Positions 39,301-41,640 are shown, counted from the stretch's first letter. The stretch: DNA of 64,000 bases from Orbicella franksi (GCA_964199315.1 OZ116706.1:28086001-28150000), one strand, 5' to 3'. The notes: generated by a model not told the origin, from the letters alone. Program-made: numbers and translations.

Positions 39301-41640
39301 CAATATCATCGGGGAAATTAAAGACACCCTATTAATATCATGTTAAATATCTAGTAGAAATTTTTGTGCAATTATTGATAGTAGACCAACTTTATTAAAC
39401 TCACAATGAAGTTAGGTCCAGTTGAGAGCCTTTGACATGCACGCAACTCCCTCATGCACAGCTCAGTGGTCATGTGATCATCCGTGGACTCGTCCCGGAC
39501 TCCCCATCTCATGTCGACCACTTGAAAGTCATAGCCCCTCTCTTGACAGTAGGACTTGAGTCGGGGGTACACTCGCTCCATCAATGTGTTACGCTCCACG
39601 GATGTGTCTGAGGGAAAAGGAAGAATAAAAAGTGAAAGATTACCTGGAAGTACCTGCAGTGTAGGTCATAGGTGTCGGGACACCCAGATACTAGTGGAAC
39701 TGACTCCTTTCCCCCTTCTACGCTGAATTTGGACGTACCTATACGTGTTAAGCGAGCAGACTATGTGTGTATGTTAATTTGAGAGGTTCAACATCAGTTC
39801 CTGAGAAAAGAACTAATATAAAAACAATCACATTATTGTTTCGGCAAGAGTACTGTAGTGTCTATCTCGATCTTCCTGAGACTACTGTTTTGACAAATCT
39901 CTGTGCTACATCTGACCTACACTGTAGATGGCAGCGTTGGAGCTGTTAGTTACAGTAAAATACTTACCAGTGAAAGTGGAACTTGTGAAGATTCGAACAA
40001 CTTTCACGTTCTCTGGGAATTCACCGTCCAGATCACCAATCAGGGCATTTTTGAGCTTCTGACTGTAACTGGGAACGTTTCCAGTATCTATGTTATTATC
40101 ATTTTCACCATTTTTCTCCTCATCGGAATCATCTACGACATCATCTTCTTCATTTTCAGGGTCATTTTCCTCCTCTTGTTGTTCATCTTCTTGATCCTGG
40201 TCGTCGTTTTCCTCTCCTTCGTCGGATTTGTCTTCATTGTCACTGTCGTCTTTGTTTTCATCCTCATGTTCTGATATTTCTTCCTCGTGATCGTCACACT
40301 CTCTCGTCTCTAAAGCCTCTTCTTCCTCGTTTTGTCTCTGAGAGGATGCTTCAGTTTCTGCACGTACCTGGCTCACCTGCACAATGAGTCAATCAATTAA
40401 TCAATCAATCATCAGTTCGTCAGTCTGTAGAACAGTCAGTCAGTCAGTCAGTCTGTCAATCAATTATTCATTCATTCAATCAATCAGTAAGTCAATCAAT
40501 CAATCAGTCAGTCAATGAGTTAAGAATTCAGTCAGTCAGTCAATCAGTCAATCATTCATTCAGTCAGTCAGTTAGTAAGTCCGTCAGTTAGTTCGTCAGT
40601 CAGTTAGTCAGTCAGTCAATCACTCCATCAGTCAATCAGTCAATCAGTCGATCAATCAATCAATCTATCAATAAATCAATCAACCAATGAATCAATCAGT
40701 CAGTCAGTCACTAAATCAATCAATCAATCAATCAATCAGTTAGTCAATCAATTAGTCAGTCAGTCAATCAGTCAGTCAGTCATTCAATCAGTCAGTCAGT
40801 TAGTCAGTCCGTCAGTCATTCAGTTAGCCAGTCATTTATTCAGTTAGTCAGTCAGTCAGTTATTCAGTCAGTCGGTCGGTCAGTCATTCGGTCATTTAGT
40901 AAGTCAGTCAGTCAGTCATTCAATCAGTCAGTCCGTCCGTTAGTCAGTTAGTCAGTCAGTTAGTCAGTCAGTCAGTCAGTCAGTCATTCAGTCAATCAAT
41001 CATCAATCAGGCAGTCAGTCAATCACTGAATTAATCAATCAATCTATCAGTCGATCGCTTGATAGATTAATCTATCAATCAATTAATCTATCAATCAGTA
41101 ATCAGTTAGTCATTCAATTAGTGAATCAATCAGTCAATCACTAAATAAATAACTAAAACAATCAATCAGTCTATCACTGAATCACTCGCTCACTCACTCA
41201 CTATTACTATTACTCACTCTTTCACTCAATTAATCAATCAATCAATCAATCAGTCAATCAGTCAATCAATCAATCAATCAATCGATCAGTCACTTATTTA
41301 ATGTTAAACATTTAAACAATGTAATTCCACAAGAAAGGTTACAAAATATTATCTCTTTTTATTAGATAACAAAAGACATTTCATACTTCGGTAATAATTC
41401 TGTCAGTTTTCAGCCAGGATTATATTTATCAAAAAACACTTAGTTTCATTTTCAATCGTTTTCAAGTTTCATCCTTCTGTCTCCACTAACGCAGGGAGTG
41501 TGGAGTGACACTAAAAAAACGGCTACGAAGAGCGTTACAGGTAGCCTTTGTTAAGACAAGTAAGATATTATCAGATTAAATACCTCATTTTGTTCCACCT
41601 TAGGCGTCCACCTCTTTTTCCGGGAAATAGCGATCCCCAT
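33302..41640 (-). CDS. NWD1-like: NACHT and WD40 domain protein, paralogue B (~1747 aa), same architecture as A
   Basis: Seven exons: 41584-41640 (MGIAISRKKRWTPKVEQNE), 39968-40376, 39405-39607, 38763-39093, 37659-38386 (GESGCGKT), 36983-37195 (VVLVLDSLDQL), 33302-36604. Total 5244 nt, open frame. An acceptor at 41665 and a candidate donor at 43100 suggest an upstream non-coding exon. Confidence 0.9.
40386..41292. repeat. ~900-bp degenerate tetranucleotide array (TCAG/TCAA/TTAG)n in the first coding intron of paralogue B
   Basis: Directly visible; it abuts the 3' splice site of the exon starting at 40376. Confidence 0.95.

Follow-up and report, generated by a model that had tools for sequence, protein, structure and literature searches.

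TeTIR has been described as the TIR-like NADase effector domain of STAND proteins of the TEP1/NWD1/NWD2 type, and an AlphaFold model of NWD1 suggests that this protein carries an N-terminally truncated version of it (preprint 10.64898/2026.09.21.753143). Bacterial DUF4062 proteins have been linked to NAD+ depletion in a second preprint. Corals and other invertebrates have expanded sets of NWD1-like genes, whose TIR-like NADase effector at the N-terminus has only just been described. The G-x-x-x-S/T consensus of myristoylation and the role of this modification in TRAM and MARCKS have also been reported; in TRAM, an adaptor of Toll-like receptor 4, myristoylation is needed for both membrane localisation and signalling (PMC5492501). 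With respect to plants, a genome-wide study of CC-NLRs mentions myristoylation (PMC6312357).

No prior statement linking NWD1-like proteins to myristoylation was found in open-access papers and bioRxiv, where NWD1 together with myristoyl gave two incidental matches and the combination of myristoylation, NACHT and WD40 gave two unrelated ones. The words 'myristoyl' and 'palmitoyl' have 0 occurrences in preprint 10.64898/2026.09.21.753143, and no localisation data for any family member were found in the open-access and bioRxiv literature searched. The conserved acylation-type start that we predict here for the NWD1-like family is not mentioned in the family papers searched.

Paralogue B and its first coding exon

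The window, i.e., the whole stretch of 64,000 nucleotides of Orbicella franksi DNA that was analysed, carries paralogue B, flanked on the same strand by paralogues A (18850-28788) and C (45231-51861). B is a seven-exon gene on the minus strand encoding a DUF4062/TeTIR-NACHT-WD40 STAND protein of the NWD1-like kind with 1747 amino acids. After the first exon (E1), E2 (39968-40376) carries an acidic linker and the first DUF4062/TeTIR strand (VRIFTSSTFT), while E3 (39405-39607) carries the core of that domain. E4 (38763-39093) and E6 (36983-37195) were placed by alignment to a spliced contig, as was E3, and have GT-AG borders. E5 (37659-38386) contains the NACHT P-loop GESGCGKTS, and E7 (31847-36604) the rest of NACHT, the NWD1 winged helix, the WD40 propellers, the stop at 33302 and a 3'UTR of at least 1.45 kb. 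In a profile search with the spliced N-terminal 603 residues, DUF4062 (PF13271) was located at residues 147-233, directly upstream of NACHT, with a score of 30.4 bits (cut-off 24.7). The genomic exon pieces of B scored above the Pfam cut-offs for NACHT, with the P-loop included (27.1 vs 26.7), HTH_NWD1 (65.5 vs 27) and Beta-prop_NWD2_C (50.5 vs 33). The nearest named relatives are proteins annotated as NWD1-like from Oculina, Montipora, Stylophora and Nematostella. The linker encoded in E2 has a net charge of about -44 over about 113-115 residues, 45% of them Asp or Glu.

E1 spans 41584-41664 on the minus strand and consists of 24 nt of 5'UTR followed by 57 nt of coding sequence (41640-41584; codons 1-19), which translate to MGIAISRKKRWTPKVEQNE. 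Its borders are ttatag/CTAGAG at the acceptor and GAG/GTATTT at the donor, resolved as GT-AG against the spliced contig described below. The codons are ATG GGG ATC GCT ATT TCC CGG AAA AAG AGG TGG ACG CCT AAG GTG GAA CAA AAT GAG, followed by gtattt. Codons 2-10 (41611-41637; GIAISRKKR, including Gly2, Ser6 and the basic run) form a predicted N-myristoylation consensus with a polybasic patch and are the best-conserved part of the exon. The start codon (41638-41640) lies in the context ACAATGG, with A at -3 and G at +4. Intron 1 (40377-41583; 1207 nt, GT-AG, phase 0) ends in cattgtgcag before GTGAGCCAG, and the next exon begins at 40376. It is filled by a microsatellite of about 900 nt at 40389-41292, (CAGT)n grading into (TCAA)n, which ends 13 nt from the acceptor.

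The exon is well supported by transcript data. A 26-mer across the E1/E2 junction has no match in the window, with up to three mismatches allowed, and its single exact match in the JGI collection is to the metatranscriptome contig Ga0099807_1083949 (7789 nt; L001 hereafter). L001 aligns to the window in seven blocks of 99.5-100% identity, all with GT-AG boundaries. Its single long reading frame (1091-6334; 1747 aa) begins at the ATG corresponding to 41640, the first in-frame ATG downstream of an in-frame stop; this stop, the nearest one, lies 43 codons 5' of the start, with no in-frame ATG in between. In the spliced transcript, Met1-Gly2 (ATG GGG, 41640-41635) is thus the translational N-terminus.

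Four RNA runs were compared with L001:1-1800. Two of them, X14 and X6, which come from other studies, contain records that bridge E1/E2, as well as the junction of E1 with a leader exon (E0), ungapped: record 4 of X14 (801 nt, L001 866-1666) and record 7 of X6 (470 nt, L001 846-1315). In X6 the Ser6 codon reads TCT, through a synonymous C>T change of its third base (L001 1108). The raw-read poly-A runs X23 and X24 gave 0 reads and neither support nor refute the junction. Furthermore, 30-68% of the sampled words of 39900-41700, a stretch of which E1 and E2 make up about 27%, were present in 14 RNA runs. The original prediction, made from the window alone, that a 57-nt exon encodes MGIAISRKKRWTPKVEQNE, ends GAG/gtattt and joins 40376 in phase 0 is therefore borne out by the minus-strand sequence and by L001, and the junction 41584-40376 proposed as a check is present in spliced RNA, exactly in L001 and in the bridging records of X14 and X6. 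We conclude that 41664-41584 is a real, spliced first coding exon of paralogue B. A chance or artefactual ORF is ruled out as its source by the transcript evidence together with the orthologues described below. A signal peptide or a furin site (RKKR) was also considered and rejected, because a hydrophobic core is absent and the domains are cytosolic.

The leader upstream of E1 is more variable. A non-coding exon of the B transcript, E(-1), lies at 43101-43992 on the minus strand, with the donor cag/GTAAGT at 43101/43100 and the loose end GTAAGTGTTAAAG in X14. It is 90% identical between the window and L001, with indels, as against 99.5-100% for the coding exons, so the promoter and 5'UTR region of B is highly polymorphic. 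Between E(-1) and E1, transcripts from three samples contain E0, a non-coding exon of 199 nt (L001 868-1066) that has no match in the window or in the whole assembly. E0 is collinear in the related coral locus L003 (L003 3473-3959). At the corresponding place the window has a palindromic MITE-like element of 267 nt (42021-42287), the arms of which (42021-42131 and 42177-42287) are 96% complementary. Given both the collinearity in L003 and the element found in its place, the assembled haplotype seems to have lost E0 through a structural variant. A short uORF (MGRPIHSS-stop) runs over the E0/E1 junction (L001 1044-1070; its E1 part is 41664-41660 of the window), out of frame with the main start. 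The leader of L001 is 1090 nt long with 16 ATGs in total, which suggests either that the 5' leader is long and rich in uORFs or that the start of the contig is in part an artefact.

Conservation of the start peptide

A six-frame regular-expression search of the window recovered the starts of all three paralogues, A with its ATG at 28788 (MGVILSRNKK), B at 41640 and C at 51861 (MGIIVSRKRRR), in agreement with the common consensus MG[IV]x[ILV]SR[KN][KR] that had been proposed for them. About two chance matches per 64 kb are expected for the looser pattern MG...[ST][RK], and one unrelated match was seen at 47050. Judged by sequence, the three-way recurrence of the full consensus, each time just 5' of a paralogue, is not a matter of chance. 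In C, a single exon encodes both the start peptide and the linker, and the start has a separate small exon in A and in B. In B of the window, residues 3 and 5 are both Ile (MGIAISR; 41626-41634), as against Ser3 and Val/Leu5 in all other B orthologues (MGSAVSR), which makes it more similar to A (MGVILSR) and C (MGIIVSR). Ordinary substitution could account for this, as could a small tract of conversion between paralogues.

Across nine cnidarian members of the family the layout is the same: an acylation consensus, a net charge of +2 to +7 at residues 7-14, and then an acidic linker of 100-150 residues with a net charge of -12 to -52. Mean identity is 54% for residues 1-10 and about 21% over the aligned columns of the linker. 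The linkers had been called unalignable, a description that fits the paralogues and fails for the orthologues, whose linkers do align.

Seven loci around B-type last exons were taken from related coral assemblies; one of these loci ends before the position of the start exon. In the other six loci, a small start exon lies 5' of the linker exon of the B orthologue, reading MGSAVSR or MGSYVSK, then basic residues and a terminal NE, with GT after every exon. The encoded peptides are MGSAVSRRRKWKSKTEQNE in L003, MGSAVSRKKKWKLKQQHNE in L004, MGSAVSRKKKRKLQQQQNE in L005 (Oculina, where it is the annotated start), MGSAVSRKKRKVKFDHNE and, in a second copy, MGSALSRKQRRVQVEHNE in L006, MGSAVSRKKKKLKLEHNE in L007 and MGSYVSKRKRSKINTNE in L009. 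The start exon of B therefore stays a separate exon of 17-19 codons in related corals, and the motif, expected to occur in orthologues of related species, is present both there and in many annotated relatives. An A-type exon (MGVILSK... or MGIILSK...) lies 5' of the next gene in the same loci. L003, L006 and L009 share the A-B-C order: a C-type last exon precedes B and an A-type start exon follows it, so the tandem array is older than the divergence of these corals. The two B-type start exons of L006 (625-678 and 5048-5101) are about 4.4 kb apart and each is followed by a linker-exon match; that species has a further tandem copy, or a fragment, of B.

In an alignment of the B loci, mean pairwise nucleotide identity starts at 0.45 in the intron that precedes the exon and 0.55 in its 5'UTR part, reaches 0.77 in codons 1-10, is then 0.63 in codons 11-19 and 0.71 in the first eight intron bases, and drops to 0.30-0.35 deeper in the intron. 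Codons vary with the residue kept at Gly2 (GGG/GGA), Ser6 (TCC/TCA) and Arg7 (CGG/AGG), and Gly2 and Ser6 are invariant across the B orthologues. These synonymous changes, together with the drop in identity from 77% to 30-35%, point to selection on the peptide. The original prediction had gone further and placed selection on the lipid anchor itself; the constraint on the peptide stands, while the attachment of a lipid is deduced from the consensus.

In order to follow the signal beyond corals, 127 proteins of at least 1250 residues from two protein searches were combined with B into a set of 128 rows and analysed with FastTree. The tree falls into two halves, with a support of 99 on each side. 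Starts with MG and the consensus were found in 31/66 rows of B's half, B counted, and in 0/62 rows of the sister half, which comprises NWD2-type proteins of insects, nematodes and rotifers; in the insect-type NWD2 half, short N-termini lead straight into the domain with no MG start. All nine members of B's own cnidarian subclade have the consensus start. In eight more rows of B's half (8/66) the consensus lies 5-15 residues downstream of the annotated start. The motif is missing in the other 27/66, about 6 of which are clearly truncated models, the others being without explanation. Label changes on the tree numbered 16-17 as compared with about 34-36 in shuffles, a difference to which relatedness alone contributes.

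The accompanying signal differs among lineages. It is a basic cluster in the B-type cnidarian subclade and a Cys at residues 3-5 in some other cnidarian rows (e.g., P0087, P0095 and P0097). In 7/7 hemichordate rows and in many rows from gastropods, the start is MGCG.S or MGCxxS, and a Cys3 that could be palmitoylated is thereby added. Myristate is classically paired with one or the other of these, a basic cluster or Cys3. The motif is probably a clade-wide acylation signal, as far as can be judged from these patterns. The scallop (bivalve) rows P0118, P0147, P0164 and P0198 keep a MYRQYL... stretch before MGSGGSKK, and P0101 and P0106 of Gigantopelta have a MILSV... extension before an internal MGCGSSK. 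In these animals, either the annotated starts are wrong or the acylation site is masked; upstream starts of the MYRQYL type, if real and translated, would block myristoylation. Several database models of relatives begin inside or just before the DUF4062 domain. For annotation, the lesson is that a signal on an exon of 17-19 codons can be missed by gene predictors.

A putative lipid anchor and its alternatives

We consider E1 to encode a putative N-myristoylation site and electrostatic membrane anchor for B, a reading to which we assign a probability of about 0.7. Under the NMT-substrate rule (PROSITE PS00008-type), charged and aromatic residues and Pro are excluded at position 3, position 6 takes a small residue, preferably Ser or Thr, and Pro is excluded at position 7. 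With Ile3, Ser6 and Arg7, B is a predicted substrate on the basis of this consensus. An NMT gene exists in the genome, PF01233 matching three collinear exons on contig C5 of G000 with a best score of 99.8 bits. Met1 would be removed and N-myristoyltransferase would probably place myristate on Gly2, as Ile3, Ser6 and Arg7 fit the enzyme consensus. A basic cluster was looked for within about 15 residues of the acylated Gly, and B has RKKRWTPK at residues 7-14 (net +5). This basic and aromatic run would, on balance, add electrostatic binding to acidic lipids. Myristate and the basic run would together keep B on the cytosolic side of a membrane, in the manner of Src, MARCKS and the TIR adaptor TRAM. 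More speculatively, the acidic linker of about 115 residues may tether the TIR-like effector flexibly to the membrane, or may pair by charge with the basic patch, and the sensing or NADase signalling of B might then take place at the membrane.

Certain points were counted against the anchor, namely the 27/66 relatives without the motif, the eight models with an internal MG, the fit of RKKR or of the Oculina KKKRK to a classical NLS, and Ile3/Ile5 in the window's B. Ile3 is a less typical residue of NMT substrates than Ser3. It does occur in a known substrate, since TRAM starts MGIGKSK (PMC9440496).

Another possibility is that the conserved element directs B to the nucleus or nucleolus, or is some other basic patch binding protein or nucleic acid, with Gly2 and Ser6 incidental and no lipid attached. 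RKKR in B, KKKRK in the Oculina orthologue and RRRRRR in P0010 do match monopartite NLS patterns, of which the RKKR pattern is not specific. Under such a function the invariance of Gly2 and Ser6 despite synonymous codon changes would not be expected, and the basic run always stands directly behind the acylation consensus at the extreme N-terminus. Related subclades, moreover, lack the basic run and carry Cys3 instead while keeping MG...S/T, which fits a membrane anchor and not an NLS. This alternation of the second signal between a basic cluster and Cys3 is the main argument for not reading the basic run as a nuclear signal, and we regard the latter explanation as unlikely. An RNA-level cause, such as the context of the translation start or splicing signals, with the likeness to an acylation site fortuitous, would account for the fair conservation of the 24-nt 5'UTR part (0.55) and of the first eight intron bases (0.71). 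It is hard to reconcile with third-position and CGG/AGG changes that keep the amino acids and so indicate selection on the protein, or with the presence of the motif in distant phyla without nucleotide similarity and in C without a separate exon, and appears highly improbable.

It may also be that B is myristoylated and yet not stably anchored, the myristate being buried or used for a protein-protein contact or a conformational switch as in c-Abl and recoverin, e.g., in STAND autoinhibition. The consensus evidence serves this reading as well as it serves the anchor, and the very acidic linker beside the basic patch could neutralise that patch within the molecule. However, the two-signal logic of a basic cluster or Cys3 is a hallmark of membrane targeting, and a fixed pocket within the molecule is less likely with a low-complexity linker of about 115 residues; in our judgement a buried myristate has little to recommend it, about as little as the nuclear signal. 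The membrane anchor thus remains our preferred reading, and the acylation signal, if true, would place the NWD1-like sensor family at membranes.

Comparison with known acylated proteins and STAND receptors

TRAM/TICAM2 resembles B in its start MGIGKSK (PMC9440496), with Gly2, Ile3, Ser6 and a basic residue 7 (Arg7 in B, Lys7 in TRAM), and in the succession of anchor, spacer and TIR-type domain. Unlike B, it is a small adaptor with a canonical TIR and without an NTPase or repeats, whereas B combines a divergent DUF4062/TeTIR with NACHT and WD40 propellers. Neither anchor nor spacer is homologous between them, and the resemblance would therefore be due to convergence. Src and MARCKS, in which myristate is paired with a polybasic stretch, compare with B in having Gly2...Ser6 followed by a basic cluster (net +5 in B). 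In Fyn and Lck, myristate is combined with a palmitate on Cys3, and the MGCG.S start of the hemichordate and mollusc relatives corresponds to this dual-acylation form. None of the four, which are kinases or regulators of actin, is related to STAND NTPases, and the basic patch of B, in contrast, leads at once into a very acidic linker of about 115 residues.

Within its own family, B agrees with the TeTIR-NACHT-WD40 STAND proteins NWD1, NWD2 and TEP1 in having DUF4062, NACHT, the NWD1 winged helix and an NWD2-type propeller, all above Pfam cut-offs, and it groups with NWD1-like proteins. A wider and more tentative proposal, to which we give slightly less than even odds, is that N-terminal fatty acylation is ancestral to the NWD1-like branch, predates the cnidarian-bilaterian split, has swapped its second signal between a polybasic run and Cys3, and is absent from the NWD2 branch. 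In invertebrates, the members would then be TIR-like NADase sensors that reside at membranes, possibly plasma, phagosomal or symbiosome membranes in corals, and an animal counterpart of the acylated plant NLRs. Among plant NLRs, N-terminal acylation motifs are found in RPS5-type CC-NLRs. Like B as we read it, acylated plant NLRs are STAND immune receptors brought to the plasma membrane by N-terminal fatty acylation; unlike B, they have NB-ARC instead of NACHT, LRR instead of WD40 and a coiled coil instead of a TIR-like N-domain, and the anchor would be of independent origin in the two groups.
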